Source of the DNA: Lepidodermella squamata
Taxonomy: Eukaryota; Animalia; Gastrotricha
NCBI GenBank assembly: GCA_047495785.1
Contig: JBLDXI010000036.1
Coordinates: forward strand, 62,001 to 126,000
DNA: 64,000 bases
Reading direction: 5' to 3'
Notes under the pieces: generated by a model
Told to the model about the DNA's origin: nothing
What the model saw: only the letters and a program-made list of their open reading frames with translations
Databases searched by the model: none
Made by a program: the position numbers and the translations under genes
Shown here: one piece after another, positions 8,881-44,214 of the stretch
Position numbering within the stretch: the first letter of the stretch is position 1
Layout of the letters: each line of letters starts with the position of its first letter

Positions 8881-9223
8881 TACTATTTGTTTTATTTTTT
8901 TATTCATGAGTTTCATATCCATGAAAAATGAAATCGTTGGAAAGCTCAGCTTCCCATTCTATGGAGATGCAAGATGAATAAGATTCAACGAAGTAGAGAT
9001 ACAAGAGTTCTCTGTAATACCGGCGAACCTCTCCCTGAGATTATGGTATGTTTTGAAAATTCAGCGCGTTTCTGGCAGATATGATATGACGAGCGACCGC
9101 GGTATCGCCGATTTCTTATCGCTGAAACTGCAGAGAATGAGTCTGATAATAATGTCACTCATTTATTGAAATGTTGTTCCTATTTCTGCCTGCTTTTCAC
9201 TCTTTCACAATTTCAGCTTTGTG

Positions 9224-11704
9224 ATGAATATGGAACCAAGGACGTATCGATCAATATCGGAGTTCACTGTTGTTAAACTCTTGTGTTATGGCCGTCTACG
9301 ACAATCTTATTTGTACCAACGTAAAGCGAGCCCTCAGGAGCAACTGGTTATCAAAGAAACCAACTTGACAAGCCTTCGCAAGGAATTTGAGAAAGACTTT
9401 GACAGAATTGCTGAAATTCTCCACGAAAGAGTGAGTTTCCGTCAATTAAGGCATCTGAAATGGTCGCCGTTTTTCTAATTTGAATTATCGTCATAGTTGA
9501 AATGAGATTACTTTTTATCGAATTTACTTTATCTCAAGTTTGAAAAATTTCGAATTTCAGGATTTGTTAATGGTCAATATCAGCCATGCCAACATTGTCA
9601 AAGTGTTTGCCACTTTTGAAGGTAACTTCCTACTTCCCTTAGTTCGCAGTAATAGTTTTCCAACTATAGAGACATATTCTGGTCAAGAGTTTTCTTCTCG
9701 CAACTGCATGATGAAATATTTAATGATGGAGTTGTGTGGAGGAGGAAGTTTTGAAAGCCTTATCGGGACTGAGACAGTACCCATCCCGGAAATTATGCTT
9801 CAAATTTGGTCCCGTCAAGTCGTATCAGCTTTGGCGTATCTTCACGGTCGAAGTATCGTTCATCGCAACATAACGACGAGCAACTTACTACTTACCGAAG
9901 ACCGTGGCACAGCGAAACTAGCTGACTTGGGAATCATCGAGAAATTAGACACGTAAGGCTGAAAAGGGGCATTCAACCGTTTTTATATGAGATTTTATAT
10001 CCCAAAAAGTGGCTCCAAAATCTCTGCTCTAGCGAAGTGGAGCACTTCACCTCCTGAGGTATGGAACGATGAACCGAAATCACCTGCAAGTGATGTTTGG
10101 TCGTTGGGATTTGCGCTCTTCAAATTAGCCAACTTCAAAGAACCAGTATGAGAAAGAAGAACCTACGAGATCATGTAGAACAAGTTTTATTATTTTTTCA
10201 GTTCATCTCGAGGGTGGATATTTTGAGGTAAACCGACAAGTTGAATTCAGTTTTAGCAAGCTGAAATTTGTTATATTTTAGTAATAATATGAAGCCGTTT
10301 GACCAGTCCGGCGGCTATTCAGATGAATTTCGGGATTTTGTCGTGCCGATGCTAGCCGCGACTCCTGGCGATCGACCGACCTCAACTCAGCTTCAACAGA
10401 ACAGTTTTCTGTTGAAATCAGCACACATGCGGTATACGAAGGTATGATTGAAAGTCTATAGATGGCAACTGAATTGTTACAACCATGCATATTCTTCAGC
10501 CCGACCAATCAGTCGCCGAACCCAACAAAGATGCTGTTAGGGTATATTCGGAATATTGTACATATTTCACAGTTGATCCATGCGGTGTACATTAAAATTA
10601 CTAGGAGCTGTTTGACTGCGTATGTCGGCGGAAAGACTTGTTGAAATTGGTGCAGTTACTGTCGAACAGTGATCTCGGTCTTAGCGCTAACTGCAAAGAC
10701 GAAAAGGGGTGTCCTCTGTTGTACCTTGCTGCCCGGGAAGGCTGCAACCACTTTGTGGAAATTCTGGTCAGGCAGTTTGAGGCAGACATTGGGTTTTGTA
10801 ATGCAAATGGCTGGACGGCACTGCACATCGCCGCACGGGAGGGCCACGTCGACGTGGTGAGGATGTTGGCTTGCGAGTTCCACGCCGACGTGAATATGGC
10901 CGACAAAGATGGCTCGACGCCACTGTACGCTGCCGCCTGGAGTGGCCAGGTCGAGGTGGTGAGGTGTTGGCTGGCGAGTTCCACGCCGACGTGAATATGG
11001 CCAACAAAGATGGCTCGACGCCACTGTACGCTGCCGCCTGGTATGGCCACGTCGAGGTGGTGAGGGTGTTGGCTGGCGAGTTCCACGCCGACGTGAATAT
11101 GGCCGACAAAGATGGCTCGACGCCACTGTACGCTGCCGCCTGGTATGGCCACGTCGAGGTGGTGAGGGTGTTGGCTGGCGAGTTCCACGCCGACGTGAAT
11201 ATGGCCGACAAAGATGGCTCGACGCCATTGGACATCGCCGCCACCTGGTATGGCCTCGTTGAAGTGGTGAGGATCTTAGCTGGCGAGTTCCACGCCGACG
11301 TGAATAAGGCCGACGAAGAAGGCAGGACGCCACTTTTCGGCGCCGCCTGGTATGGCCGCGTCGAGGTGGTGAGGATGTTGGCTTGCGAGTTCCACGCCGA
11401 CGTGAATATGGCCGACAAAGATGGCGAAACGCCACTGTACGTCGCCGCCAGGAATGGCCACGTCGAGGTGGTGAGGATGTTGGCTGGCGAGTTCCACGCC
11501 GACGTGAATATGGCCAACAAAGATGGCTGGACGCCACTGTACGTCGCCGCCTTGAATGGCCACGTCGAGGTGGTGAGGATGTTGGCTGGCGAGTTCAATG
11601 CCGACGTGAATAAGGCCGACAATGGTGGCTGGACGCCACTGCGCCTCGCTGTCTCATTAGGCCACGTCGCAATAGCCGAAGTGCTCCGCGTGGCTAGTCG
11701 CTAA
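9224..11704 (+). pseudogene. Pseudokinase + 10 ankyrin repeats, copy 1 (frameshifted)
   Basis: Same 7-exon structure as copy 2; VIKE, HRN, DLG, PPE and SDVWSLG motifs. A 1-nt deletion near 10963 (GAGGTGTT vs GAGGGTGTT) splits the ankyrin ORF. Confidence 0.85.
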
Positions 11705-12625
11705 GCTTTCTGCTGATTAAGGATTAAGCGCAACATCATCGAAATACTCAAACAGACAACATCAAAATAGCTCATCGTCAAATGTTCACCTAGACACACA
11801 ATGACTCGTTAATGTCTCGGCAAACTTCAGCGAAACTACATAGAAAATGATGTAGTAATAAATCGCTATAGTCCTATAGCTATAATAAAGCACAAAACTG
11901 TATCCCAGAGAAAATGGGCTCGAATATCGCTGAATAAAAACGAATCTGTATGCGTCATTTTCTTTTGCGAGTGTAAAGACGCTAGAACTGCGAAGACCTA
12001 GCCATGGAATGCGAATGCTGCGACGCAACTTCAACTTTGAGGAAAGCGCACCTGGTATTTTAATTTTATCATATCAAGAAAAATACAGTTGAGTGATATC
12101 CACGTTAGGCTCATCAGCCGCTAATAAAATTCGAATAAAAGCATTCAAATTTGAGGTTTGGAAATATGCTGATCGTAGAGAACCGTGAATCGGACGGTTA
12201 ACGGAACACAATTTTGCATTAAAATTGTATTTGCTTAATTTTTTTTTAGATTCTGATAAATTATGAGAAATCTATATCGGGCGGGCGTTCGAATAATTCA
12301 AATAGTGCGGTCGAAAAATGCTGGGATAAAACCCTCGGCAGCCTGAAAACATCACCTTCCAATTTGAAGGCATCTTTGATAGTTTGATAATGATTGTCGA
12401 ACCGATTCGGCAGCTGGTAGCCGACATTATCTCGATGCTACAATAACGCTGCGACTGAGGCAGGGCTAAATGCTGATATTTGCATCGCACTTGATGATTG
12501 CCCGGACGACGAAGAAACTGTTCATGCCGTGGTTGAGACACTTGAAAGCGAGAATCGTTACCAGGACCAACGCGTAGTTGTGATCCTAAGTGATTATTAT
12601 CCTATTATCCTATTATGTTTGACTA

Positions 12626-18515: not shown

Positions 18516-19698
18516 TGATTGCGAATTTCAACCCTCTGCTTTTGCTGCTGATGATGCTGGCATGTATTGGTGGCTGCTGTTGGCAAGAAGCCGTTGAACT
18601 GGGTTCGGTGCTTCTCACGGTTCAGCAACCGATTCACCAACTGTGTGCCAGCTGCCGATTGATGTGATCCTTTCAATGAATATCAAGTTTGTTTCATTTG
18701 TTTACAAATCCCGCAAATACTACTTTTTGTATTCATAGCTGGGACCGATTTACCGAAAACCAGGCGCCAGGTGCTTGTAGCCGTGGTGTGGGTTTCCATC
18801 TTTTCCCATTTTTTTCGATTGTACTCCGATTTATGTACTTATAGCATGGTCGAATGTGCTACAAATACGAGGCGTTGACTCCATTTTGCGTGCCTGGAAA
18901 TATCGGCTGTAACAAGCAGGGTGAAAGACGGTAGGTCCGAGTTTTAAAATTAGATTTCTGAGTAATCTAGTTCGGCGTGATTTTTTTATTCGGCTTCCAT
19001 CCAAGTTTTGATTTCCAAAGTGCAGCATTTATCTCTAATAAGTTTTTCGCATCTTATCTTTCTGGGTCGATTTCCAGCTGTTCTGGTTCGGAAATCCGAA
19101 TCCACTCTTGAACCTGAGATTCAACCTCAACGAATGCGATAAGAAACGAACTGTTTTCAATGTAAGAAATTCTGAAATTTTAGAGATATGTTTAGTTCGT
19201 CTTTTTGTAGAATTTGCCTCAAGGCGGCAACAAAAGTGTCGCAGCACAGTCATGCATCAATAACGGTGGTCAGTTAGCTCAAATTAGGTCAGACGACGAA
19301 CTGAAGTCAGCTAGGGCGGCGTTGCGGGCTGTTCAGGCTGGTCAGGCGTGGATCTCTCTCGTTGGTTCAAACAGAGTGCTCAAGAGGGACGATGGTTCCG
19401 ATTTCAAATTTATGGCTTAACAGTGGGGTCTATCAATTCGCAATCCTGGATGCGCCTATTCTTTTTCGGCGCGGAATTCAAATTTGAAATCTCCGACTTA
19501 GCGTATTTTCCAAGAAAAACACCGATTCTCAACTTCAGTATTACAAATTCTCAACTTCAGTATTACACTCTCAACTTCATAGTTAAGTGTACATGTCTGA
19601 TTCTACACCAGTCGGATTATCTACCAACTATTACTATGATACATTTCCTTGTGATGTGAATTTTGTTCAAGCTTTATGCGAACGATTTACGTCTTGAG
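18516..19698 (+). pseudogene. Type B 4-Cys/CTLD gene, decayed
   Basis: KPLNWVRCFSRFSNRFTNCVPAAD*CDPFNEYQ, GRMCYKY, LFWFGN..LNLRFNLNEC, then a broken CTLD (GGQLAQIRSDDEL...ALCERF). Stops, frameshifts and an internal deletion relative to the 29823 gene. Confidence 0.8.
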
Positions 19699-20289
19699 CT
19701 AAATTCTTCATTTAAATGCTGTATTATTGGGCAGTCAATAGCATGTGGAGTGAAATGTGGAAGCGATTTAATGTAGAGCAAGATGTATCAATAAAGTTCG
19801 ACTAACGGAGGCTTAATAATCACTGAGCACCTCATTGACATATTCTGTGAGCTGTGAGTTCCTGTGAGTTCAAGGCAGAACTTCTTCTTTTCTTTGAGGC
19901 TGAAATGATACAGAAAATTTGATTCTGTATTCCGAACCATCTTTTACTGGAACCAAATTTACGGTTGAGCGGAATCAAACTTGCATTTCGAGAAACAAAA
20001 TTCGTAACATGCCAGGATGAGTTTCTTTAATAATTCTACAAATTTCAGTCGAATCACGAGTTCTTTATCGTTCTCGTAGAAAATGTTACGCTGAATTTAC
20101 GCTGATGGTGATTATTGTAGAATTATTGTGGCCAATCTTGAAAAGCTGGTTCCGCTAAAGCATATTGGATTCCTCTAACGCAAATTAGGGTCAAATTTCA
20201 AAAATTTGAATTCGCAGTCCATTTAACATGTCTTCACATTTGCACGTGAATGCTAATTTTTTTATTTTGTTTTATTTTGCCTCCAGCAG

Positions 20290-20779
20290 TCCGCGTATTT
20301 CCGTTGCGTTGACAAAGGAAGCGCGTCAGTTCGATGCCTGCCAGACACAATTGGCTACGATGCGAACACAGAAGTTCGAATTCCGGCTGCTGGGACTTAT
20401 CCGGACGAAGATTTCTGCAATGGCATGCAAAAAGTGTACACTGTAGTGCTTTTGGACGATACCGGCAATAAAACAGTCGGAGCACAGGCATGCATTGTGA
20501 GCGGTGGTCAGTTAGCTCAAATTAGGTCCGATGACGAGTTGGCGTCGGCTAGGTCAGCATTGTCGAGTGGTACAACTGATGGTATGACATCTCTCTCTCT
20601 AGGCAAAACAGCGATTTGAAGTGGGATGATGGCTCCGATTTCGAATTTCATTATGCTCAGTGGGCTGCCCTACCTACTGATGGTTGCGTTGTTATGTCGT
20701 TTTCCGCATTTCTGACCGACTATTACTACTTTTCTGTTGACTGTGAGCTTTATGCGAGCGATTTATTCCAAGCCCTTGA
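20290..20779 (+). pseudogene. Decayed 4-Cys+CTLD exon (probably part of the 18516 gene)
   Basis: SAYFRCVDKGSASVRC...GGQLAQIRSDDEL, a frameshift, then KWDDGSDF...LCERF. Confidence 0.75.
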
Positions 20780-21811
20780 GTTTTGAAAACTTGTCAATTC
20801 CGGCGTTGTGCCAGACAGATGAGTGAGTGGACGTGGAAATGAAAGGATATTTACATTGTACCACCATCGCCACATGGCTACAAGCCAAGAAAAAAACATG
20901 GATGTGATTCATCACTGTGCTCACTATGCTAAACACAACCTTCAATGATTCATGCTACTGTCCAATGAATAAGAGTTAATAGCCAATTCGGCAGCTGATT
21001 CGCAGTTAAAGTATGACACATTTCTTGCAAATTTGCCGCTGACTCGGGAAATGTCAGATCAATTCAGCAAGACACAAATTGCCAGTGGAAAAAATAAAGA
21101 CGCAGTATTGTATCAGTTCCTATGGTGGGAGTAAATTTATCGTGAAGTTTTGATGGAAGATGGAATCCTTAACCCTGATTCCGTTTCAAGTGACTTTAGG
21201 AAGTCAGATCAAGTATCTTTTTCTAAACCCTCATTTTTCGACTTCTGCTTCGACTTCGTTTCCAAATCACCAAGTCCGAAGTAAAGAAGAAAAGATGAGA
21301 AATGTGTGAAGGAAAGAAAAGAAAAAAACCGATGACAATTGAGTCCGTAGATATACATGAAACAATAAAGCATTTTTCCATTTCGATTTCCGATACTTTG
21401 AAGTTACTCTGGTCTTTTGCGTCGTAAGGATAATTCATCTTCCATTCAAACATGATATTATTTGTTTTACTCTATTATTCATGAGCTATACATCCATGTG
21501 CTATGAAATCGTTGTAAAGCTCGGCTTTACATTCTATATTCTATATTCTATACAGATGTAAGATAAATAATTTTCTACGAATTCGTCGTAGAGATAAAGA
21601 AGCCAAACGTTCTCTGTAATACCGGCGAACCTCTCCCTGAGATTAAGGTATATACAGCGCGTTTCTGGCAGATATGGCGAGCCACCGCGGTATCGCCGTT
21701 TTCTTATCGCTGAAATTTCAGAGAAGTAGGCTTATTACAATGTCGCTCATTTATTGAAGCTTTGTTCCTATTTCTGCATGCTTTTCACTCTGTCATCATT
21801 TTCAGTACGTA

Positions 21812-24153
21812 ATGAATATGGAACCAATGACGTATCGATCAATGTCGGAGTTCACTGTTGTTAAACTCTTGTGTTATGGCCGCCTACGACAAACTTATTT
21901 GTACAAACGTAACGAGAGCCCTCAGGAGGAAGTGGTTATCAAAGAAACCAACTTGACAAGCCTTCGCAAGGAATTTGAGAAAGACTTTGACAGAATTGCT
22001 GAACTTATCCCCGAAAGAGTGAGTTTCCATCGATATACATTTCCTGGGAGTGTTTTCCGTTTTTTATTACTTTAAATTTTAAATGAGGCTACCCAGTAGA
22101 AAAATTGGGAAGAGTCTGTAAACCTAAATAATTTTTAAAAATTTTCGAACTTCAGGATTTGTTAATGGTCAATATCAGCCATGGCAACATTGTCAAGGTT
22201 TTTGCAGCTTTCGAAGGTAAATTCCTACTTCCATTAGTCCTAAGTAACAGTTTTCCAACTATAGAGACATACTCCGGCCAAGAGATTTCTTCCCGAAACT
22301 GTATGATGAAATATTTAATGATGGAGTTTTGTGGGGGAGGAAGTTTTGAAAGCCTGATCGAAACTGAGACTGCACCCATCCCGGAAATAATGCTTCAAAT
22401 TTGGTCCCGTCAAGTCGTATCAGCTTTGGCGTATCTTCACGGTCGAAGTATCGTTCATCGCAACATAACGACAAACAACGTACTACTTACCGAAGACCGT
22501 GGCACAGCGAAACTAGCTGACTTGGGGATCATCGAGAAATTAGACACGTAAGGCTGAAAAGGGGCATTATATGAGATGTTCCAAACAGTGGCTCCAAAAT
22601 GTCTGCTCTGGCGAAGTGGAGCTCTTCACCTCCTGAGGTATTGAATAAAGAACCGAAATCACCTGCCAGTGATGTTTGGTCGTTGGGATTAGCGCTTTTC
22701 AAATTAGCCAAAGAATCAGTATGGGAATGAACCTACTAAATCACTTGACAAGTTTCAATATTTTTACAGTTTATCACGAGGGTGAAAATTTTGAGGTAAA
22801 CCGACGAGTTGAAATTAGTTTTAGCAAGCTGGAATTTGTTATATTTTAGTGATAATATGAAGCCGTTTGACCAGTCACGCGGCTATTCGGATGAATTCCG
22901 GGATTTTGTCGTGCAGATGCTCGCCGCGACTCCTGGTGATCGACCGACCTCAACTCAGCTTCAACAGAACAGTTTTCTGTTGAAATCAGCACCCATGCGG
23001 TATACGAAGGTATGATTGATATTCCATATGGCATCCTCATTCGCACAACCATGCAAATTCTTCAGCCCGACCAATCAGTCGCCGAACCAAACAAAGATGC
23101 TGTTAGGGTAATTCAAAATATTGTAAATGTTACGCTTGATCCAAGCCTTGTAAATTAAATTACTAGGAGCTATTTGGCTGTGTTTGTCGGCGGAAAGACT
23201 TGTTGAAATTGGTGCAGTTACTGTCGAACAGTGATCTAGGTCTCAGCGCTAACCTCGAAGACGACGATGAGTGTTCTTTGTTGTACCTTGCAGCTCGGGA
23301 AGGCTGCAACGACTTTGTGGAAATTCTGGTCAGGCATTTTCAGGCAGACATTGAGTTTCGTAATGGGAGTGGCAGTACACCAATGCACATTGCCGCCGAG
23401 AAAGGCCACGTCGAGGTGGTGAGGATGTTGGCTAGCGAGTTCAACGCCGACGTGAAAATGGCCGACAATTATGGCATTACACCACTGTACGTCGCCGCCG
23501 AGAATGGCCACGTCGAGGTGGTGAGGATGTTGGCTGGTGAGTTCAACGCCGACGTGAATATGGCCAGAATAAATGGCTGGACGCCACTGTACATCGCCGC
23601 CTGGTATGGCGACGTCCAGGTGGTGAGGGTGTTGGCAGGCGAGTCCAACGCTGACGTGAATAAGGCCAGCAAAGATGGCTGGACGCCACTGTACATCGCC
23701 GCCTGGAATGGCGACGTCGAGATGTTGAGGGTGTTGGCTGGCGAGTTCAACGCCGACGTAAATAAGGCCAATATTTATGGCGGTACGCCAATGTACATCG
23801 CCGCCTGGAGTGGCGACGTCGAGGTGGTGAGGATGTTGGCTGGCGAGTTCAACGCTGACGTGAATAAGGCGGACAATTATGTCATCACACCACTGTACGT
23901 CGCCGCCGGGAATGGCGACGTAGAGGTGGTGAGGGTGTTGGCTGGCGAGTTCAACGCCGACGTGAATAAGGCCAACAAAGATGGCTGGACGCCACTGTAC
24001 GTCGCAGCCAAGAATGGCCACGTCAAGGTGGTGAGGATGCTGACTGGCGAGTTCAACGCCGACGTGAATAAGGCCAACAAAGATGGCCGTACGCCACTGC
24101 ACATCGCCGTCTTCTTAGGCCACGTCGAAGTAGTGAAGGCTCTGGGTGGCTAA
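21812..24153 (+). CDS. Pseudokinase + 9 ankyrin repeats, copy 2 (intact, ~647 aa)
   Basis: Exons 21812-22018, 22156-22547, 22589-22718, 22770-22795, 22850-23009, 23066-23107, 23167-24153 join in frame (1944 nt). HRD is HRN, DFG is DLG, Gly-loop is degenerate; 34-aa TPLY..A..G repeats. Confidence 0.85.
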
Positions 24154-24194
24154 GCTTTCTGCTGATTAAGCCACCCAGAGTTGAGGGCTGTGAT

Positions 24195-26198
24195 CTAAAA
24201 TAAGGTCAAACTCACAGGGGGATCGGGAGCGAACTTCTCGCACACCGCATATGGAATGTGGGTGTTACAGTCGAACGATTTGTATACCACTGGGGTTGCG
24301 TAAGTTCCATCGTCGGTAGGAGCCAGGGCAACACAGGCTTCGTCCGGTGGTGAAACCCACTGGCTCGCAGTGTTCGTGAAGCTGGAACCGTCGTACCACT
24401 GAAACTCGCCGTTGTTGTGGTTCAGGCCAATCCACGCAGATTCAATGACAACACCACCGGCTTGGTACGCCTGCAAGTTGTAGATGGCATAGGTCAAATC
24501 ACCGGCCGACATTATTGTCGCGAGCGAGCCGTTGATAGCTTGGCCCTCTGCCATTGCGCCGCCCCGAGTTGCTGCGGTTAGCTCAGTGACGATTAGCTTC
24601 TTGACAGATAACGCGCACTTGGCCTGGTCCGGGAAGACGCGGTAGCCTGGGAATCGGTCTTCAGTCGCCGAGTCACAGCCAACGCCGGTGCTTGATGTGC
24701 ATCGAACTATTGACCTGTTAGTTTTCTTGGCGCAGCGAACAAAGCCGACCTGAGCCTGATGGGAAAGGATAGGAGTACTTAAATATTTTTCCTAAATTCT
24801 ATGAAGCTTTCTGAACCTTAGGTCAAAGCTAAAGCAGAATAAAATCATTCTTTGGAATTTTGCATTTTCTAGAGAAAAGTTTCCCTGGAACTTACGGCAG
24901 GGGCAAGATCAGCGAGGCAGCTGCCATAGTTCATTGGGAAGCTCTGCGTGGATGCGAACAGCTTGATCTAAAATGAATTGGTATGCTGAAAATTAATTAG
25001 CTTCGTCCAGCGTTTAAAATTTACTTGATAAAAGTTCTGGGGGCAAATGGCGTAGCACGACTTGGCTCCAGCTCCATCCATGCATTGAACAGCTTTCTGT
25101 TTGAAAAATCACAAGTTAGGATGGTATACGATTCACAATTTCCTACTCACCCCTAAAACGCAGTTCTCCAAATTCGAGTAGATACTGTTTGAGTAGACCT
25201 GCGTCTCCGTGCTGGCTGAACAGCCGACGCTTCGTGGTTTGCAGAGATTGAACTGGCCGGAAGTTTTGCTGAAACAACGAACATGCTGAGTCTCGCTGAC
25301 CGGAACAGTCACTGAAAAAATAAAACAAAAAAGTAGAACGCGAGGCCTGGATTTCGATCAAATTGCAATGAAAAAAATATTTTAAAAAATTTTTGGAAAT
25401 TTTAAATTGAGAGGAATTAATCTACCTTGGCCGTTGGTGCAAAGGCCGAGATTGCCATACAGCGTTGTGCTAGTGTTCTGGAAAAAAATCAATTAGGCTG
25501 AAGCCATGACCAATTCGATTTTAGACTTACCGAACTATTCGGACAGGTGAAGGAATCTGGAACGCACGTTTGGATGGTACCGTTCAATGTGCAACGCCTA
25601 AATTGCAAATTCTAGGGAAAATGAGGAATATGCAAAAAGTTAGCAATCATTAAAATGTCTCACGCTGAAAGTGACCCGTCTCGCCTCGCATGCGTTGAAG
25701 TTGAATTTGAAACTCAGCGTAGCTGCTGTGTTGGCGAACCAGAAAAGCTAGGCAAAACAAGATAATTTTATGCGAAATTGTTTTGTAAATTGGTTACTTA
25801 CGTTCATTTCACCTCCAAGCAAATTGCAACCCAGGTTTCCGGGCCCGCATGATGGGGTGAGAGCCCCATATTTGTAGCACATACGGGCATTCTAATAAAT
25901 AAAAAAATTGCACACGAAAAAACAAAATTTTAAAAATTTGCTAACCCCAGGTACCGACTCGCAGGAAAACCGGCCCTTGCTGTGAAATAAGCAATTTTTG
26001 AATACAGATTTTATATTTAGGTTCAAGAGACCTGAAAATCACGAAGAGGATCACAGCCAGTAGCCGCTTGAATGCAGGTCGTGAATCGTTCGTTCGTTCG
26101 TGCGAGAAGCATCGCACCCAGTTGGTTGGCCTCGACCTGCCAAAGGCTGGATCGACCAGGGCGATCAGACATAGCAGAGCTAAATAAGTTAGAGCCAT
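24195..26198 (-). CDS. Type B secreted 4-Cys-module + CTLD gene (10 exons; compensated frameshifts)
   Basis: ATG 26198, signal peptide. Exons 26198-26032, 25979-25946, 25891-25802, 25747-25664, 25611-25531 and others; final exon AQVGFVRCAKK...WIGL...WYDGS...AVCE. Confidence 0.65.
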
Positions 26199-28492
26199 CA
26201 AAAATAAACTTTTCAGTAGCTGGAAAATTGAATGAATGAATTTGAAGAATGGCTCTCAATTTCAACGTTCTCTTTCAGGCCATACGTTTGCGGCGCCGTT
26301 CATCTCTCTGTGTCATGGCACGCTCCGCCAAACACTGGCCGCAAAAATCGTGTGCTGATCTTGTTATTTTTGACCAAGTTCAATTTCGCAGACATTTGCT
26401 GAGGTTTTTATTACAAAAATAGATTGCTGGAAAATTTGAACGCACTCGGTATAGTGAAAAAAGTTGACGTCATTGGAAAGAAACTATAATACGAAGAAAA
26501 ATCATCCTAGTTTATTTTTGGACAATATTTTCTGGTTCATTCTACAATATTTTCGATGACATTCGATGATGGCTCGCCGAAAAATTAATCACAACGCTGA
26601 TCGAACAATAGTACCTCGGTTTTAAAAAAAACGTAACTTTTGATATTTCGCCGAATACCCGCTGATTTAGTCGAAATATGTTTGAGACAAATGGGACCAC
26701 CTGCCAACGATAGCGCAGAGGATTTAGAGCCTGTCCATGTCAGTAAATTATAATTTCTTGTTTTATAATTGACATTACAAAGACTTCACTATGTTTCGAA
26801 CAGCTTTGGACATAATCAGCGGGTATTTTCGGAGTTGTTGGCGAGAAAATCCATTTTGTTGGTGAAAGTATGCCAATCGATAGCGGTTTCCGTTGCATAG
26901 GTGAGAGTCCACAATTTGATTGTGAAAACGCAAAGTTGATGGTAGAAATTATATTTCCCCTTCCGCGTTAAAATATACCCTGAATTTGCTGGTGATTTTT
27001 TAAAATTATATAGTCAATTTTGACTCGCAAGATAGATCCTAATATTTTGATTTCAGGCCACTGGAAAATTCCAAAAATTAGCAAATTAGTCTCCGCTAAC
27101 AGGAGGACCCGAATTCAAAAAAATGATTCGACACGGTACGGCTTGGGGCAATCTTGAAGCTTCCAAGTTGACTAGAGATTTCAACCAAATAAAACGAGGA
27201 AAATTTGAAGATTTTCTACTAAAAAAGCTCCAAAACCTTAAAAAATCGCCGAAACAGGGGGATAAATTCTCATTTTTGTTGTGCGGTCTTGCCCCTCCTC
27301 TGTCGCTTACTGGAACGATTCCAAAATAATGCCACAATTGATCTCAATAAATTGGATTGATGTATAAGATACATCGTATTCCATCTTCTTTACTTCATTC
27401 TCTCACGAATAATTTCAGATCAAAAGAATCATAAAAACCTCTCGCATAAGACGTTGTCAATGAGGTAATCGCAAGTTATTGTTCTATAGTAGAAATCGCT
27501 ACTTGGATACTGATTGATTGCTTGATATTGATACGAAAAATACACGCAGCCATCAGGCGAAGAATTGATAACCCACTGCGATGCAAATTGATTGAAGTCC
27601 GAACCATCGTCCCATTTGAATACGCCGTTTTGCCCTTGAAGAGCCACCCAGTTATTGCCGATTCTTGGTGGACCTTTCAGCAGCTGTCTGGCGGCCGCCA
27701 GCTCTATATCTGACCTAATCGAAGCCATCGTAGCATTTTGTTGCGCGCATTTAGCCGAACCGGCGTCATGATTGCCTACCCCCAAAGGTAATACAAAGTA
27801 TTGCTTGACCACATTTTGACAGCTGGTCTCGTCCGCATAGTTGACTGTAGCCGGAATTCGAATTTCAGTAGCCGCGTTACAGCCTGGTCTGTCGCCGACG
27901 CATGGAACCACGGCGTCACTTTTGCCAACACAACGTAAATAGGCAGACTGTAAAATATTAAAAACATTTGTTATTCGAAATTCACACATCTTCGATTCCC
28001 TTAGCATTTCGAAGGGTACAAAAGGGCACATAATTAAGGACATTGAAAAAATCACACAAATCAATTATGCTAAACAATTCAAACTTGAAAACCCAAATCA
28101 AATTTAGATATTAGAATTTTCCTGTTTAATGGCATTAAATAAAGTACTTGTTTAAACAAGATTTTGCCTTGCTTCACCTGTGTGAGGTCTTTGGGACAGG
28201 CTGCGTATGACAGTCGATCGGAAGAATCCTTGCAGGAAACAGCTTTCTGTTAAAGAAAACCCGCATGGTATGTCAAAGCTCGAACATTTATTTAGTGTTT
28301 AAAATTACGCCGAGCAGGCAAGATTCACGGTTGACGTAAACTTGAGACGAATATTGCCGAGTTTCGCTGCTAGCATAGCAGCCAGAGTTCTGCGGTCGGC
28401 AGTTGTTGAATTTTCCAGTTGTTGAATCAAAGCAACGGATATGCGGCTTCTCGCTGATAGGAACGGTGACTGCAAGTTGAACAGATCACAAT

Positions 28493-28685
28493 TAGTGTGC
28501 GGGAGTACGTGAGGAGATGGGTATAGGGGATACGTGCACCCCACCTCGAGTGGTCCAGGCAAAAGAACCCAAAAAAACCACATGAGAACCACATAAAAAC
28601 CGCAGGACCCTGTAGCCAGATGAATTCAGAGCTGAAAATACCCAAACGTCAACCCCACCCCTCGGGGATCCTACTTCATCCACTG
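28493..28685. mobile_element. Degenerate hAT MITE (family H1)
   Basis: Ends TAGTGTGCGGGAGTAC / GATCCTACTTCATCCACTG resemble those of 57128-57278. Confidence 0.6.
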
Positions 28686-28814
28686 AAATTGGTCAAGCTA
28701 AGGCATCTTCGCTCTTGAACGAAATGCAGAACCAACAATAACTTGAGAAGTTTACTAACCTGATCAATTGGCGCAAGAAGCGAGATCGGGATACAACGTC
28801 GATTCAGTGACCTT

Positions 28815-29088
28815 TAAATAATAAAAGATACAATCTAACTTCCCTCGAAGTAATCGGTCTCTTCGTTGGAGCCCGTGGTACCATCACCAAGTTCTTCCGC
28901 GACTTCGCAAAACGTCTCGAACTACCGCAGTCACTCATGTGCGACATCGTCATTTCAACGATAAAAGACTCATGCAAAATCATAAATAATCATTTGTACA
29001 GAAAGAATTAGTTAAATGTAAATACCCGCGTCTATAGGCAAACTGTTACTTAGTATCAGTCGGATCATTGTTTTAACAATAAACTACT
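28815..29088 (+). mobile_element. 5'-truncated non-LTR retrotransposon (RLE type; R2/NeSL/Utopia-like), 3' end
   Basis: KRYNLTSLEVIGLFVGARGTITKFF...CKIINNHLYRKN* (stop 29008-10), 3'UTR, AATAAA-CTACT tail, ACCTT target duplication. Confidence 0.75.
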
Positions 29089-30406
29089 ACCTTGTTAAAC
29101 TGAATCTTGGTCGAAAAATACAACTTACCCAATTGTTCGGGCAAAAGTAAGGCTCTGGAACACAGGTTTTGGTAACGTCAGTAGAAGTGCATCGTCTGAA
29201 TTTTAATTTCTAGAAAAATGATACAAACAATTATTAATAGAGTTTGGGATTTCAGCAATTCCGGAATTCTCACATCGAAAACAGCTCTTTTCTTCTCGCA
29301 TTCGTTTAGGTTGTAACGGAGATTGAGAGTCGGCAACCGGTTTCCGAACCAGAAAAGCTGGGAAAAATGGAGACAATTTATTTCTGGATTAATAAAAGTT
29401 ATTTTTGCTCACGTTCATTTCACCGGGTCTGTTGCAGCCAACATTTCCGGGCATTCACTTTGGAGTTAGAGCCTCGTATTTGTAGCACATCCGAGCATTC
29501 TACATAATTTTGAGAAACATTATTCTCCAAGACAAAGAATAGGGAAATAATCCTTACTCCTCGTTCGCAAACGCCAATCTTTCGAAAAATTTGGGCCCAA
29601 CTGTCAATAAAGAGAAAATACCAATAAAGAATAAAGATTTCTGTAGATAATTCGACTGACTAACCGAATATTCGGTGAGTAGATTACAGGCATTGGAAGC
29701 CAGTACGCAAGACGTGTATCTATTGCTTAGCTGCGAGAAGCATCGCATCCAATTCAAAGGCTTGCTACTTTTAGCTAGCCCAACAACCACAACACAAAGC
29801 ATAAACAAATGACAGGTATTCATTATCCGAAATAACCGAAATAAATTCTAGACTTCAATAAATGAATTAATGAAAAAATAAAGTGAATTAGAAATGAGGT
29901 CGATTTTCCCTCGATGACAGACAGAAACTTCTTTTTTTAAATTTTTACGCGCCGCACGCTTTCGTCTCACATATCAACAATAGCCTTTTGGCTGGGAAAT
30001 TGAAGGCTATAGCAAAAAATCCCGATTATCTAAAGATAGCTCGTCTCTTGGCCAAAGTTCATTTGCGATTCGAGACAAAAAAAATCGATCCGGAAAGTAA
30101 AACGGTGTTCTGATTTCCTAACAACAGACATAAGACGCCTGTTTTTGAGTTCATTCAAGCATTTGTGAATTACGTAATCGAAATCACGCGTCCTCGAGAT
30201 TTTTCCGATTTATCGCGAGCCCTGCCTAGGGGCGCAAAAAAACCTGGAAAGCTTTATGATGAAATGCAGACAAATCGCAAGGTCACCTATTTTTAGAAAG
30301 TGTCGCCAGACAACGCGTGTGAAGAATAGCTATCTATGAAACTATAACGCTCATTTTCATTCTAGCATTTGTTCTCTTTTTTGATAATAAAGACCTTTTT
30401 ATTATA

Positions 30407-31830
30407 ATGGCTATTCGCATTATAATTTTCCTGGGCTTTGCTGGATCGGCCTTCTCAGTCGACTACAAGCGCTGCTTTTCCCGGGTCAATGATACCTTTA
30501 CTGGTTGTAAATTGGCCTGCTCTTTCTTCGACGAAGTTCAACTCGGACTCGCTTTGCCGTCAACTGCCAGTTGCTTACAAGGGGTGAGATTCTGCGATTT
30601 TCAGAATCAAAATTAAATATTAAAGTGTGTTTATTTCAGTCCGCTAGAAGCTGTTTCAACTACAAAAGAATCAACGTGCGGTGTGTCCCTCGCAACTTGG
30701 CCTGTTCATCGATCGATGAAGTCATGGTTAGCCGTGAAGATTTTTTTGATATTTTCCGTAAATTTCATTACTTCACATATAGACAACTGAGTTTCTGGGC
30801 AATAATTTCGAAACACAGTATAAATTTTGCAGGACAACTGTCAAAAACTTTCTGGTCAGTCTTTTCTCTATTCAATATTTAATTGTTAAATGCGATTTTT
30901 TTAGAATGTTCAAGCTAAGCTATGCGACAAAAATGGCCAGCGAACTTGTATTCCAATCAATGGATCACGTCCTAAGGGTGGGGTAAGTGGAAAATATTGA
31001 ATAAATTGGACTTATTTTTTCCCAATTTTAGAAAATTATTGGTTATTGGACTAGGACGTTGATGTGTATGGGGCAAGAAAATCGTGAGTTTCTCGATCGA
31101 TGGCAATTATTTTTGAATTATTCATTTGTTTAGTTGTGAGAAGCGACGCAGATTTCGTGTCGCACTATCGATGCTTTCTTCAAAGCGACCGGTCATTTGC
31201 GGGCTGCCGAACAACACCTTGCAAAGCGGACAGCATGACGCAGGTAAGCCGATGATTCATTTGATTTTCGCTCATTGAAATTTATTTTCTTTTATTCAGT
31301 CCTATAGTCAGTGACTTTGATTTGATTTGATTTGATTTGATTTATTCAGTAAATCACAGGTCTTTGTAAATCAATCATTTCAAATCAAATCCCCAAAAAA
31401 TCGATAGTAAATCAATCAAATCAAATCATCAGGCCTGTTTAAATCAAATCAAATCAAATCTTTCGCATAGGGAAACATGAGTATCATGGTAAATTTCTGG
31501 GGATTCTTTCAAATTTCAAGCTTCGTTTTAGCACTATGAGTATGAAGGGGCATGAATAGCTCCAGGCTTTGGAAAACAGTAGTTTTCAAGGCAAATGTGA
31601 GTTCTCATGTTTAGCAACAGGGGAATTCCGAGAGTTCTTATTTTTATAAATCAGCAGTAAATCAAAAATCAAATGGGCTAAATTTAAATCAAATCAAATC
31701 ATCTTGAAATTTTCTAAATCAAATCATCAAAAAATGGCCTAAATCAAATCAAGTCTCTGCCTATAGTGCAGGAGCATACATAGATGAAGCTCATCTAGAT
31801 GAAGCTCATTGCGTCGCTCTAATCATCAAC
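30407..31830 (+). pseudogene. Type A 4-Cys gene disrupted by a MITE and truncated
   Basis: Six open exons (MAIRIIIFLG...RCFSRVNDTFTGC | SARSCFNYK | TTEFLGNNF | NVQAKLC | KIIGYW | HYRCFLQSDRSF). Exon 7 is interrupted at 31309; no CTLD exons follow. Confidence 0.8.
31309..31759. mobile_element. hAT MITE with (AAATC)n subterminal repeats
   Basis: TIR CAGTGACTTTGATTTG / CAAATCAAGTCTCTG; 8-bp TSD CCTATAGT. Confidence 0.9.
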
Positions 31831-31967
31831 TGGTCAAAACAAAATCGCCTCTCTGAATATTTTCCAGTCCTTGTACGATCACGCGAAAATCTAAGTACAT
31901 TACGCCAATCCTACGACCATTTTCAAATATTTTGACACTGATGGCGAGTTGAAAATTTTTTAACGAG

Positions 31968-32849
31968 ATGGGAGAAGCGACTTTCATGGGAGACATCCAA
32001 AACATGACTCATGTGACTTTCAATACTAATTCTATGGTTCCAATTTTGATGATGTTGAAAAACTACGATCTCCACAATTTTCTTCGGAGAATCGTCCAGC
32101 CCATTCTCGATCGAACTTCCGCAACGGAAATCGATGTATCCATTTTAATTTCAGCGGCATTGGGGATATTGCTACCAAGACCACGTGATGAATTGGCTAA
32201 ACTATTTAAGCGATTTGTTATGGTAGATTCAGCAAAGTGGGATAATTCTTACAAAATCGGAGTTCAAATTCGACTGGGAGATGAAAATGAATTCTTCATG
32301 GACCCTGAAGAAGTTTTGTGTTACGGCGAATGGTTGCCAAACAAATTCTAGCTGCTAACAGGTCTAAATTCATAATTTTCCTAACTGCAGACAAATTATT
32401 GGAGTCAAGCCGGTCTCTAATTAAGGAATCGATTATTCAAAAAATCAATAATCGATCGATCGAAATCGATATTGTGTCTACGAGCGATCGATGCCCCGAA
32501 GTCGAAGCTCACCATTCTCAATATGATGCCAAAAGATGCGAGTCAGACCTGGTTGTTCTACGCACGGACTTTCCTCGATTTCTACGTTCTGACACGCATT
32601 GATGAACTCGTGATTTCGCGTAGTGGTTACAGCGAAATGGCCTCATTTCACAGCCTGCGACCCACTTTGCGGTACTTTGTAGAAAATGTAGATTCGCCGA
32701 GAGAGGCGTTGGTAAAATCGTGCCTCTTGAGCATGGCTATGGTGAAGCGATTCGGTTTGAGAATGCTGGCAAAGGTATGTCTTGCCAGTTTCAACATTTC
32801 AACCGAATCGGCACAACGTTCGCTTTTGAAGTTTGTGATTGAAAGTTGA
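31968..32849 (+). pseudogene. Fucosyltransferase-like (alpha-1,2/1,6 superfamily) remnant
   Basis: Three overlapping frames carry motif I KIGVQIRLGD, motif II IIFLTAD and motif III FLDFYVLTRIDELVISRSGYS; two frameshifts and no evident introns. Confidence 0.65.
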
Positions 32850-33184
32850 CAGAATTCGATGAAATTAAAACGATGCGTCCCGCTGTCACCATGCATAATG
32901 AAATGCCGACTTTATTCAGCTGATTTGCGCAAAAAAATATTTTATATTTAATTAAGTTACGGGATTTTAAGATAACAGGATGGCATGAATTATAGCAAGA
33001 AAAAAAATCAATATCAACTGACATGTTGCTCATGATCAAGTGCATTTGGCCTTATAAGCAACAGCCAGAATTGAATTCAAGTCGCAGCATACCTAAAAGA
33101 TGCCAGAAACGATTAATCACTTTAATTAGGTTTAGATATAGATGCAAAATGATGACAGTAAACACAGACAGTCATCGATGATCA

Positions 33185-34683
33185 TCACTCGACGGAGATC
33201 TCGCAAACGACGTGCTGGCTCATACTAAAAACTTCAAAGCACCCAGCTCGGTTCAGGTGTACGAAGGCCGCGTCGCCGTCAAGAGTCAAATGAACCATCG
33301 CGCACGGTGCTTCCTCATCCGGAAGGAAAGTCCAAAATCCATGAGGTGCTTCATCAATGATAGATCCATCCGCCCATTTCACAACACCATCGATATAGAA
33401 TGCCCCGACCCATGCGCGATCTACGTTCAGAAATGCCATCAGCTGCCTGATTGCAGCCATGTCATCAGCTGTTTTCACCGTAGCAATTCTCAAGTTTGCA
33501 TTCTCGCACGTAGACGTAGCGTAGGTCACGTTGAAGTTGAATTCTTTCGAAAGGATCGTGTATTGCCTAACGGCGCTTATGCCGAGGTGATAAGTCTCAC
33601 AAACAGCGCTTTTCGAGTAGGCTTCACATAGATGATCGTTCAATTTGAGGTTGTCCAACGATTCCCAGTCAAATTGGGTATATTCCACGCACATTTCACC
33701 GCCCGGCTCGCCTGGTGCCCACAGGTGAAACGCCGTGAAAGCAGAGCCGTCAATCCATTGGAAGGCGCCGGAATACTTGTCCAAGCCTATCCATCCCGAG
33801 GAGAAGCCTGCAATCGCAAGAGCTGACCGAATTCGTCCTTGTTCTTGCAGTGTTTTGACAGTAGCGAGTTGCCCAGATTTAGCCACACAAAGGTCTCGCG
33901 CCTCGCTGCGACTGATATCCCTCTGCTTGTTAGCTATGAAGATCGTTTTAACGGCGCTGTTGCATAATCTTTCGGAGGGAAAAAATGAATCGAGCGGGAA
34001 GGGGACTTCTTCCCGTTCGCAGCCGGCAGTTGCCAATCTGCAAGTTACCCTGCCACCCCTTGTTTTCGCCACGCATCTCACATAGCTACCATTCTATATA
34101 GGTAGTTTTAAATTCAATTAAATTTGTGAAAAAGGCACATGTTTTGCCAGAACATTCAAAGCAAATTAGGGTAAGGTTACCTAAATCTGCTTAAAAAAAT
34201 CCATTTTTTTTCAAACGATGAGGTTCAAGACCTTAATGTGTCTTATACCAATTCAACCATGCTGAATTCGAATTTTGATGAATTGGAATCTCCCGGCTCG
34301 CCTGGTGCCCACAGGTGAAACGCCGTGAAAGCAGAGCCGTCAATCCATTGGAAGGCGCCGGAATACTTGTCCAAGCCTATCCATCCCGAGGAGAAGCCTG
34401 CAATCGCAAGAGCTGACCGAATTCGTCCTTGTTCTTGCAGTGTTTTGACAGTAGCGAGTTGCCCAGATTTAGCCACACAAAGGTCTCGCGCCTCGCTGCG
34501 ACTGATATCCCTCTGCTTGTTAGCTATGAAGATCGTTTTAACGGCGCTGTTGCATAATCTTTCGGAGGGAAAAAATGAATCGAGCGGGAAGGGGACTTCT
34601 TCCCGTTCGCAGCCGGCAGTTGCCAATCTGCAAGTTACCCTGCCACCCCTTGTTTTCGCCACGCATCTCACATAGCTACCATT
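33185..34683 (-). pseudogene. Orphaned duplicate of the terminal exon(s) of the giant CTLD gene
   Basis: Identical to 46993-48491, but its upstream exons are not included in this duplication unit. Confidence 0.75.
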
Positions 34684-34881
34684 CTATATAGGTAGTTTTA
34701 AATTCAATTAAATTTGTGAAAAAGGCACATGTTTTGCCAGAACATTCAAAGCAAATTAGGGTAAGGTTACCTAAATCTGCTTAAAAAAATCCATTTTTTT
34801 TCAAACGATGAGGTTCAAGACCTTAATGTGTCTTATACCAATTCAACCATGCTGAATTCGAATTTTGATGAATTGGAATCT
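33702..34881. repeat. 590-bp direct tandem duplication
   Basis: 33702-34291 equals 34292-34881; CC microhomology at the junction. Confidence 0.95.
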
Positions 34882-35013
34882 CCTGGCACAGTCCATCGGA
34901 AACTATCGGGAACTTGGCAAATGACGTTATTCTACGGCCAGATTTGGACTTAGCATGATAAAATTAGGTAGTGTAAGAAAAAGGACAGCAAGATTCGCTT
35001 TTGCATGCATTTT

Positions 35014-35351
35014 CATTGTGTGACCACTTAAAAGTCCAATCCAATGCGCACGCTGATTGGTCAATCGATCGTTGCTACGACTCCCGGATGAAACGTTCAG
35101 TCGTGCGATCCATAAGATTTTTTGCAACAAGTGTTTTTTGCCGCAGTAGTTTACCACGATTAATATGGAGTTTACGCTCGTGGTCAATGGAAACCGGGCA
35201 GAGGGCGTGGCAAGGTCATTTTTTAAATAAATATAAAATATTTTATTAGTGGATCGCACGACGGAAATGTTTCATTCCGGACTCATTATCAACGATAAAT
35301 TGGCCAATCAGCGTGCGCGCCTAAGTTAAACTTACCAGTGGTTCCACAATG
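35014..35351. mobile_element. Degenerate foldback/MITE
   Basis: ~100-bp imperfect inverted arms (GCGCACGCTGATTGGTCAAT / ATTGGCCAATCAGCGTGCGC; GTCGTGCGATCCA / TGGATCGCACGAC). Confidence 0.6.
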
Positions 35352-35433
35352 CTAGCCTTGAATTGGGAGTTAGGCAATCGCTAATATACCTAATTTCTTT
35401 CAGCCATTTTATTTCGATGCGCATTTTGCTGTA

Positions 35434-36320
35434 CCGGGGCGGGGTACAATTGTGACAGGTACAAGGTACAAGTTTGACAACTTTTTTTCTACGACCTTAT
35501 GGCCTACCTGCGGTTGACTTCCCAAAATTTTGGAAAAATATCTAACAAATCCCTTGGCTCCTGTACAATAAGGGTATCGATTTTTCTGAATTCGATTCCA
35601 TTATTGACTGCTGATTTTTGGAATCGAATCCTCGAAAACCCTAAAATCACCCCTCTGGATCACCAGGGCGGTTTTGGATAGAATTCTTTACACCAAAATG
35701 AAGCTGGCGTTTAGGTGGTAATAATTGAAGTGAAAGCAGTCAATTTTAAAGAGCCAGTTCCAGGTAAATTACCTGCAAAGTAGCGATTCTGGAGGAGCAA
35801 GTTTGATAACTCGTTAGAACGATTTTTACAGCAGGTACAATTTTGACAACTCAGAAAGCTACCTTGAAAGACTTCTTAATCAAGTTTTGGATGGCACTCC
35901 GATAAAGCCCGTCTCATGTAGATAATTCTAGAATTTTTCACAAATTCTAGTACCGTTCGTTTATTTTTGGTGAGTTTCGAAGCAATACCTTGAAAACAGC
36001 GTTTTAATAAAAAATCAACAAATCTCAATTACCACCACGTACACGATGAATCACTGCTGACGCTAGATGATCAAGTTGAAATAGGGGCATTACCATAGAG
36101 TTGTCAAAGTTATACCAACTTGTCAAAATTGTACCTTTCTTTCGGGCCATTTTCCTCGTATGAAATACCTGGATCAGGCCGTGTAAAAATTACAAAAACT
36201 ATGCCCAGGGCAAGGGGGTTCTAACGGTGTAAAAATTTGGTTAGAATTCACCTAAATTGATTTTCTAGAATGTTTTACCAAGTTGTACCTTTTTGTTGTC
36301 AAAATTGTACCGTTCCCCGG
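35434..36320. mobile_element. Non-autonomous Tc1/pogo-type element
   Basis: TA|CCGGGGCGGGGTACAATTGTGACA ... TGTCAAAATTGTACCGTTCCCCGG|TA; internal GGTACAA-TTGACAAC repeats. Confidence 0.85.
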
Positions 36321-36759
36321 TATGTTTATTTGAAAGGTTCAAACTTGTTAAGCATAGTTTAGTTTATAAATCCACAAAATTTGAACCCAATAGGACGCAA
36401 ATTGAGCGAGTATGCAGTTTAGGTTCAGAAGTGAAGTTTTTATGCAGATTTATAGCACCCTCGAGCGATTTTAAATTTTTGTCTTTTTTGACTTTCATAA
36501 ACGATGGCTCCCTAACGGTGAGGTGTTGGCTTATGAGATTTTGTGAGCTTACTGGAATGGGTTCTGACTGCTCATGCTAAAATTTGAGCCCGGAGATCCT
36601 CATGGTTATGGACTGACAAGCGTTTGAAAAAATTGGAAATTTTTTATCCAGATTTATGGACGACAGCCGATAGCCATCAACGGTTTCATCAAAGTCGGTA
36701 AACAACATTAGGTCCCATATTCAGCAATGGTTTGCCGTAGCAACATTTTGAACTTTCAT

Positions 36760-37961
36760 AACTCAGCTTCAACAGAACAGTTTTCTGTTGAAATCAGCAC
36801 CCATGCGGTATACGAAGGTATGATTGATATTCCATATGGCATCCTCATTCGCACAACCATGCAAATTCTTCAGCCCGACCAATCAGTCGCCGAACCAAAC
36901 AAAGATGCTGTTAGGGTAATTCAAAATATTGTAAATGTTACGCTTGATCCAAGCCTTGTAAATTAAATTACTAGGAGCTATTTGGCTGTGTTTGTCGGCG
37001 GAAAGACTTGTTGAAATTGGTGCAGTTACTGTCGAACAGTGATCTAGGTCTCAGCGCTAACCTCGAAGACGACGATGAGTGTTCTTTGTTGTACCTTGCA
37101 GCTCGGGAAGGCTGCAACGACTTTGTGGAAATTCTGGTCAGGCATTTTCAGGCAGACATTGAGTTTCGTAATGGGAGTGGCAGTACACCAATGCACATTG
37201 CCGCCGAGAAAGGCCACGTCGAGGTGGTGAGGATGTTGGCTAGCGAGTTCAACGCCGACGTGAAAATGGCCGACAATTATGGCATTACACCACTGTACGT
37301 CGCCGCCGAGAATGGCCACGTCGAGGTGGTGAGGATGTTGGCTGGTGAGTTCAACGCCGACGTGAATATGGCCAGAATAAATGGCTGGACGCCACTGTAC
37401 ATCGCCGCCTGGTATGGCGACGTCCAGGTGGTGAGGGTGTTGGCAGGCGAGTCCAACGCTGACGTGAATAAGGCCAGCAAAGATGGCTGGACGCCACTGT
37501 ACATCGCCGCCTGGAATGGCGACGTCGAGATGTTGAGGGTGTTGGCTGGCGAGTTCAACGCCGACGTAAATAAGGCCAATATTTATGGCGGTACGCCAAT
37601 GTACATCGCCGCCTGGAGTGGCGACGTCGAGGTGGTGAGGATGTTGGCTGGCGAGTTCAACGCTGACGTGAATAAGGCGGACAATTATGTCATCACACCA
37701 CTGTACGTCGCCGCCGGGAATGGCGACGTAGAGGTGGTGAGGGTGTTGGCTGGCGAGTTCAACGCCGACGTGAATAAGGCCAACAAAGATGGCTGGACGC
37801 CACTGTACGTCGCAGCCAAGAATGGCCACGTCAAGGTGGTGAGGATGCTGACTGGCGAGTTCAACGCCGACGTGAATAAGGCCAACAAAGATGGCCGTAC
37901 GCCACTGCACATCGCCGTCTTCTTAGGCCACGTCGAAGTAGTGAAGGCTCTGGGTGGCTAA
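36760..37961 (+). pseudogene. 5'-truncated copy 3 of the kinase-ankyrin gene (ankyrin exon intact)
   Basis: Begins at the duplication junction inside kinase exon 5; ORF 37008-37961 is identical to 23200-24153. Confidence 0.85.
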
Positions 37962-38002
37962 GCTTTCTGCTGATTAAGCCACCCAGAGTTGAGGGCTGTG
38001 AT

Positions 38003-43631: not shown

Positions 43632-44214
43632 TATCCGAAATAACCGAAATAAATTCTAGACTTCAATAAATGAATTAATGAAAAAATAAAGTGAATTAGA
43701 AATGAGGTCGATTTTCCCTCGATGACAGACAGAAACTTCTTTTTTTAAATTTTTACGCGCCGCACGCTTTCGTCTCACATATCAACAATAGCCTTTTGGC
43801 TGGGAAATTGAAGGCTATAGCAAAAAATCCCGATTATCTAAAGATAGCTCGTCTCTTGGCCAAAGTTCATTTGCGATTCGAGACAAAAAAAATCGATCCG
43901 GAAAGTAAAACGGTGTTCTGATTTCCTAACAACAGACATAAGACGCCTGTTTTTGAGTTCATTCAAGCATTTGTGAATTACGTAATCGAAATCACGCGTC
44001 CTCGAGATTTTTCCGATTTATCGCGAGCCCTGCCTAGGGGCGCAAAAAAACCTGGAAAGCTTTATGATGAAATGCAGACAAATCGCAAGGTCACCTATTT
44101 TTAGAAAGTGTCGCCAGACAACGCGTGTGAAGAATAGCTATCTATGAAACTATAACGCTCATTTTCATTCTAGCATTTGTTCTCTTTTTTGATAATAAAG
44201 ACCTTTTTATTATA

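Follow-up and report, generated by a model that had tools for sequence, protein, structure and literature searches.

RIPK4 and ANKK1 are vertebrate RIP kinases of the TKL group with the kinase domain at the N terminus and ankyrin repeats at the C terminus, RIPK4 being an active enzyme. ILK and RNase L pair an ankyrin array with a kinase fold of impaired catalysis, which serves as a scaffold or regulatory module. HER3/ErbB3 and the JH2 domains of the JAK proteins, which read HRN and HGN, respectively, in place of HRD, serve active kinases as allosteric partners; in plants, dead kinase folds occur in fast-evolving, clustered gene families encoding the kinase-pseudokinase immune receptors known as tandem kinase proteins. 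In Giardia lamblia, 133 of the 198 Neks carry 1-26 ankyrin repeats behind an N-terminal kinase domain, and 71% are without key catalytic residues (Manning et al. 2011, PMC3218828). With an ankyrin repeat deleted, one inactive Nek was localised differently, at least one inactive member is cytoplasmic, and the association of Nek domains with ankyrin repeats was stated to be seen in no other species (PMC3218828). Here we describe gene B, which occupies positions 21812-24153 (+) of a 64-kb window (the whole stretch of eukaryotic DNA that was analysed, C36:62001-126000 of a 121-Mb assembly in 151 contigs) and encodes a kinase fold that has lost the catalytic aspartate, followed by nine ankyrin repeats. 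We read it, with a probability of roughly 60%, as a working gene of a NEK/STE20-like pseudokinase family that is restricted to one lineage, expands in tandem and carries C-terminal ankyrin arrays of variable length, and infer a scaffold role for its product.

A first-pass annotation of this DNA had described an intact spliced open reading frame (ORF) of about 647 aa in seven exons. Joining eight blocks from a three-frame translation of 21700-24250, with GT..AG introns, yields an open coding sequence of 1896 nt and 631 aa, so that the intactness stands and the sizes need a minor correction. The introns measure 137, 48, 41, 51, 54, 56 and 59 nt, and 14 of the 14 splice sites are canonical. The predicted exons are the following:

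Exon 1, 21812-22018 (+): start codon(s), degenerate Gly loop, beta3 lysine (VVIK) and alphaC as far as the conserved glutamate (…PER)
Exon 2, 22156-22216 (+): beta4 (SHGNIVKV), ending in phase 1, with splice sites shared with copy A, the other copy of the gene in the window
Exon 3, 22265-22547 (+): hinge (YLMMEFCGGGS), alphaE, catalytic loop (HRNITTNN), beta8 and DLG, recognised in Pfam, PDB and paralog alignments
Exon 4, 22589-22718 (+): activation segment, SPPE (the APE equivalent) and SDVWSLG (alphaF), recognised in Pfam
Exon 5, 22770-22795 (+): 26-nt micro-exon (FITRVKIL), required for the frame
Exon 6, 22850-23009 (+): alphaH-alphaI with the conserved arginine of DRPT and the end of the kinase fold, recognised in Pfam
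Exon 7, 23066-23107 (+): 14-aa linker (PDQSVAEPNKDAVR)
Exon 8, 23167-24153 (+): family-specific linker, nine ankyrin repeats (34-aa period from 23365) and the stop codon

The predicted splice model is supported by its conservation in copy A and by two alignments to outside kinases. Between gene B and copy A, substitutions in exons are sparse, insertions and deletions are clustered in introns, and every splice site is kept, those of the micro-exon included. P0255, an uninterrupted ORF of 189 aa from a public read assembly, aligns with exons 1-3 as a single stretch (34% identity over 191 residues), and a local alignment to P0128 places the micro-exon on the PMRxxFLI-type helix found after alphaF in STE20-like kinases. 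Exon 1 is kept in 28 of 30 paralog loci, and reading through intron 7 runs into a stop. The true start of the gene is probably the ATG at 21818, as most paralogs have L in place of the first methionine of gene B and retain the second. In both genes an acceptor-like TTTCAG site lies 6-9 nt 5' of the start codon (21795-21811 in gene B and 9207-9223 in copy A), which could be the acceptor of an intron in the 5' untranslated region or a trans-splice acceptor. A nematode origin of the genome was considered and rejected, a search of it for the canonical SL1 leader, allowing up to one mismatch, having found none.

Pfam, PDB and homology searches were made exon by exon, the joined model being used in local alignments only. 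The Pfam profile Pkinase (PF00069) matched exon 3 at 1.5e-15 (57.8 bits against a cut-off of 31.7, profile positions 74-148), exon 4 at 6e-5 (positions 165-191) and exon 6 at 6e-3 (positions 229-263), and residues 3-285 of the joined model align with other kinases, placing the protein in the eukaryotic protein kinase superfamily with a single kinase fold in 21812-23009. The Pfam profile Ank found nine stretches in exon 8 (E-value 1.2e-71) in a 34-aa register with a period of 102 nt, which agrees with the tandem 33-34-aa repeats of ankyrin repeat proteins (PF00023/PF12796). As read from the translation, the Gly loop, C-Y-G-R-L-R, has lost two of its three glycines and retains the middle one alone; the beta3 lysine is present (VVIKE), and a glutamate ten residues ahead of the H-x-N-I-V strand stands where that of alphaC is expected. 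In the catalytic loop, HRNITTNN, asparagine replaces the aspartate and threonine the lysine, and the terminal asparagine is retained; DFG has become DLG, APE has become PPE, and alphaF reads SDVWSLG. Under the operational definition of a pseudokinase, namely loss of the equivalent of K72, D166 or D184, gene B qualifies through the asparagine at D166, with the equivalents of K72 and D184 kept. The motifs given in the first-pass annotation (HRN, DLG, a degenerate Gly loop, the VxK lysine, PPE and SDVWSLG) were correct, and the pseudokinase-ankyrin fusion that it proposed is borne out by the Pfam domains together with the motif reading.

Searching the genome with exon 3 brought up at least 30 paralogs of close or moderate similarity, with their main cluster on C34 and others on C78, C4, C40, C29, C17 and C11; approximately 14 family members with the same exon layout lie in C34:345-545 kb. 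The 30 paralogous copies of exon 3 that were read carry HRN or HGN, save one with HLN and one with RRN, and asparagine occupies the catalytic-base position without exception in the alignment of 17 paralogs, in both cases down to 54% identity. The third position of the Gly loop is arginine in every paralog with a readable exon 1, the lysine of the catalytic loop is threonine in gene B and its closest paralogs, and the DFG position varies as D/E-L/I/F-G, with glutamate in place of aspartate in some members. From the HRN/HGN state and the invariant asparagine throughout the paralogs, it follows that the catalytic substitutions are ancient and maintained. That they were no recent decay had been proposed earlier from their occurrence in both paralogs of the window; copy A does carry every one of them, and the wider family agrees. 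The ankyrin ORFs of the paralogs hold 3-31 TPL/TPM motifs, the largest array being a 1263-aa ORF with 31 such motifs (L039:1331-5119 (+), equivalent to C34:426331-430119) vs the nine repeats of gene B. The family evolves by clustered birth-and-death; its ankyrin array changes fast and ranges from about 4 to 31 repeats. Two long open frames, at L011 and L024, were considered as intron-less copies and rejected as in-frame read-throughs of introns.

Other ORFs lie inside the main cluster on C34. A 674-aa ORF (L043:2676-4697 (+), equivalent to C34:467676-469697) encodes an NB-ARC/NACHT-like STAND NTPase (NB-ARC match of the 4e-11 class) followed by ankyrin repeats, an NLR-like arrangement. Between family members are an RVT_1 ORF (3e-34; L034:1694-3085 (-)) and a DDE_Tnp_4 ORF (2e-17; L047:2597-3712 (-)). 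For an ANF-receptor ORF of the cluster, a search at E<=1e-20 returned no match.

The kinase fold is maintained by purifying selection, as estimated from codon comparisons. Over the 303 codons of the kinase and linker exons, gene B and copy A differ with a dN of 0.048 and a dS of 0.162 (omega 0.30; binomial p=1.2e-5 vs neutrality). Across 15 paralogs, the 105 pairwise comparisons of the kinase part have a median omega of 0.34 (range 0.18-0.68), and a GY+F3X4+G4 codon model on the same set gives 0.44. Neutral dN/dS in the kinase part had been named in advance as an outcome that would refute the first-pass proposal; values of 0.30-0.44 are the opposite outcome. The ankyrin exon, compared between copy A and gene B, changes at about three times the rate of the kinase part, with an omega of 0.81 overall, 1.27 for the surface positions of hairpin/helix-1 and 0.65 for the framework.

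The best PDB matches of exon 3 were the pseudokinase domain of GCN2, both domains of TYK2 (including JH2, with its HGN), the STE20 kinases MAP4K, SLK and TNIK, ULK3 and NEK1; with exon 3 alone, STE20-type kinases outrank NEK1. With a family profile built from 17 paralogs, the best single-domain match was NEK1 (6.9e-15), followed by ULK3 (8e-15) and TNIK (3.6e-14). No RIPK appeared among the best 60 PDB matches of either exon 3 or the profile, and of the resemblance to RIPK4/ANKK1 noted at first the domain order stands and the kinase type does not. A search of 1.84 billion representative proteins found no close relative. Two of them matched below 1e-30, both multi-kinase proteins with single domains at approximately 42% identity or less; top matches of this kind (for instance P0121, matching over 15 stretches) were rejected as relatives, each having several kinase domains with an ordinary HRD. 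The nearest outside relative, for the N-terminal half, is P0255, in which GEGGFG and HRD are present and whose best match is NEK1, at 4e-24 and by five logs. P0255 was also considered as a transcript of the organism from which gene B comes and rejected, its best match in the genome having 48% identity. Kinase exons of the P0255 (NEK-like) type are numerous in this genome (at least 150 scored, among 547 candidates). A word search with the ankyrin exon returned only generic ankyrin proteins of 25-55% identity. In our reading, the family is a dead offshoot within a very large expansion of NEK-like kinases, the kinase group being a close call.

What such a protein might do is suggested by its parts. 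Gene B may encode a cytosolic scaffold or allosteric adaptor, whose ankyrin solenoid would bind a protein partner specific to each copy and whose dead kinase domain would serve as a docking/dimerisation or allosteric module, plausibly towards the active NEK-like kinases of the same genome; the protein itself would phosphorylate no substrate. The cytosolic location, already assumed in the first-pass annotation, is consistent with the absence of a visible signal peptide or hydrophobic N terminus in the predicted model.

Several points weigh against a constrained NEK/STE20-like pseudokinase with a scaffold role. The splice model of gene B is a prediction resting on homology, and the group call is close, NEK1, ULK3 and TNIK lying within one log of E-value in the family profile. 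The omega values of the ankyrin exon are weak, as they depend on a repeat alignment of uncertain register and on copy A, which is perhaps a pseudogene in that exon. The lysine, the glutamate, the asparagine of the catalytic loop and the aspartate of DLG are retained in gene B, and HER3, which likewise reads HRN, keeps weak activity. Because these four residues are retained, there is room for residual catalysis, nucleotide binding or nucleotide-dependent switching in gene B.

These same residues are mostly retained among the paralogs, and conserved in the close ones, as would be expected were the fold an atypical active kinase that binds nucleotide and carries out weak or non-canonical phosphotransfer, the family then being one of enzymes and not of scaffolds. 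An asparagine held invariantly at the catalytic-base position, where no random residue is seen, and purifying selection across the whole fold would suit such an enzyme as well. We nevertheless regard it as unlikely, given that every member read is without the catalytic base, that gene B and its close paralogs have threonine for the catalytic-loop lysine, that two of the three Gly-loop glycines are gone with arginine fixed at the third position, that the DFG aspartate has become glutamate in some members, and that the GCN2 and TYK2 pseudokinase domains are among the best PDB matches. More speculative still is the suggestion that the HRN genes form an animal intracellular recognition repertoire, in which variable ankyrin arrays would bind non-self or damage ligands, the dead domain would recruit active NEK-like kinases or the NB-ARC-ankyrin protein, and the copies in the lectin cluster would be recent recruits. 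Such a repertoire would be loosely analogous to the kinase-independent bridging of NLRP3 by NEK7 and to the plant tandem kinase receptors, and we think it quite improbable.

The pseudokinase-ankyrin gene has further copies in the window, which holds three ankyrin blocks and two genes, set among ORFs with C-type lectin domains (CTLDs):

Copy A, 9224-11704 (+): older paralog with approximately 86-88% nucleotide identity to gene B; its seven kinase and linker exons are open and in the same HRN/DLG state
Nearest neighbour, 24198-24791 (-): convergent CTLD ORF whose end lies 45 bp away from the gene B stop codon (custom CTLD hidden Markov model, 7e-29)
Tandem units, 22952-36759 and 36760-50567 (no strand assigned): 13,808 bp each, 100% identical, with a 2-bp microhomology (AA) at the junction
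Copy C, 36760-37961 (+): 5'-truncated duplicate of gene B with the last 58 nt of exon 6, exon 7 and the ankyrin exon, and no N-terminal part of the kinase

The ankyrin exon of copy A has ten repeats, one more than that of gene B, and a 1-bp deletion near 10965 breaks its frame after repeat 3; as the deletion lies in a G run, it is possibly a frameshift and possibly a sequencing or consensus error. The ankyrin repeats are homogenised within each gene (10605-11704 vs 23167-24153), most of those in copy A reading EFHADVNMA and most of those in gene B EFNADVNKA: EFHADVN is found in seven of eight repeats of copy A, usually followed by M, and the N is found in all repeats of gene B, usually followed by K. 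This pattern points to gene conversion or unequal exchange inside each array after the split of the two genes. The third ankyrin block (36760-37961) was considered as a further paralog and rejected, being the 3' part of gene B carried over by the tandem duplication. The left breakpoint, at 22952, falls within exon 6, which is why copy C has almost none of the kinase fold, and on the strength of 100% identity across 13.8 kb the duplication is either a very recent event or an assembly artefact. A shorter internal tandem repeat of 590 bp (33702-34297 and 34292-34887, 99.8% identity) lies in a CTLD-coding stretch on the minus strand and has its duplicates at 47510-48695. Upstream of copy A, an ORF at 2741-3253 (-) carries a MULE transposase domain (4e-5).

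That gene B is embedded in a lectin cluster, as first proposed, is confirmed: the window holds 26 CTLD-type ORFs, some of them confirmed by Pfam, two of which flank the gene (19211-20783 (+) and 24198-24791 (-)), and the cluster extends on C36 to approximately 275 kb. The first-pass annotation had seen here a two-compartment immune locus, in which a cytosolic pseudokinase-ankyrin sensor works and co-duplicates with the surrounding secreted C-type lectins. Besides the dense cluster itself, the presence of the ankyrin exon and three lectin ORF groups on the 13.8-kb duplication, the fast evolution of ankyrin surface positions, the NLR-like gene in the main family cluster and the CTLD-like ORFs found in that cluster would all be in keeping with such a locus. 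We consider it very unlikely on the evidence of the duplications and of linkage. Homology between copy A and gene B is limited to 9007-11721 vs 21609-24170, that is, the gene and approximately 200 bp upstream, with no homology between the two in the flanks beyond, so that this duplication copied the gene alone; the 13.8-kb duplication includes the three lectin ORF groups yet cuts the kinase gene, leaving a kinase-less fragment. Linkage was tested directly on the flanks of the C34 members with a CTLD cut-off of 22.6 bits, and the ~14 members in C34:345-545 kb are accompanied by four marginal, partial CTLD-like ORFs of 19-24 bits, near or below threshold, vs 26 strong ones in the window. Among the best 150 of 774 candidate CTLD matches in the genome, none lies at the family sites in C34:345-585 kb, C78 and C17, and one lies approximately 17 kb from the family members on C11. 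With ~774 CTLD candidates in the genome, adjacency by chance is easily obtained. Family members unlinked to lectin genes, which the same annotation had named as evidence against its proposal, are thus found in the C34 cluster, and the co-duplication with lectins does not hold. A weak association of the family with CTLDs may persist; the place of gene B among lectins looks incidental, with no functional pairing, and would have arisen by local duplications, gene-sized as well as segmental, in a region prone to them.

That the copies are by-products of a duplication-prone region on their way to becoming pseudogenes, as the broken frame of copy A, the truncation of copy C, the stops or frameshifts at loci L017, L021 and L022 and the transposon ORFs nearby (MULE at 2741-3253; RT and DDE_Tnp_4 in the C34 cluster) might suggest, is very unlikely for a gene B that is fully open with all of its splice sites canonical, for kinase parts that are intact in both copies A and B with an omega of 0.30, and for a family that is constrained as a whole, and the deletion in copy A may itself be a sequencing error.

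The main result is therefore corrective, gene B being real and constrained and the lectin partnership being without support. Set against the systems described above, gene B shares its domain order with RIPK4 and ANKK1, from which it differs by the absence of the catalytic aspartate and by a fold resembling those of NEK1, ULK3 and STE20 kinases. ILK and RNase L differ from it in having their ankyrin repeats at the N terminus and in being single-copy conserved genes, RNase L with a nuclease domain in addition. HER3 and the JAK JH2 domains belong to the tyrosine kinase group and to receptor or JAK architectures devoid of ankyrin repeats, so that the likeness is an analogy of state and not of ancestry. 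The plant tandem kinase proteins are defined by two kinase folds per polypeptide, and gene B has one.

The Nek-ankyrin proteins of Giardia are the closest described parallel, with most members devoid of catalytic residues and a large, lineage-specific family with fast turnover; in sequence, the relationship is demonstrated at the level of the kinase superfamily only. The repeats begin with a TALM-type motif in Giardia (PMC3218828), whereas those of gene B begin with TPLY, TPLH, TPMH or TPMY and depart from that pattern. The catalytic losses are heterogeneous in Giardia, in contrast to the one fixed state seen here, with asparagine at the catalytic base and arginine in the Gly loop, and the host there is a protist, in contrast to a genome that is animal-like, with hundreds of CTLD-type ORFs. 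In the literature searched, no description of such a pseudokinase-ankyrin family in an animal was found, and detailed accounts of a dead kinase followed by ankyrin repeats, in dozens of clustered copies, exist for Giardia only. A constrained expansion that arose independently in an animal-like genome would provide a second natural case, in which one could test what a dead but conserved NEK-like fold adds to a rapidly varying binding array.

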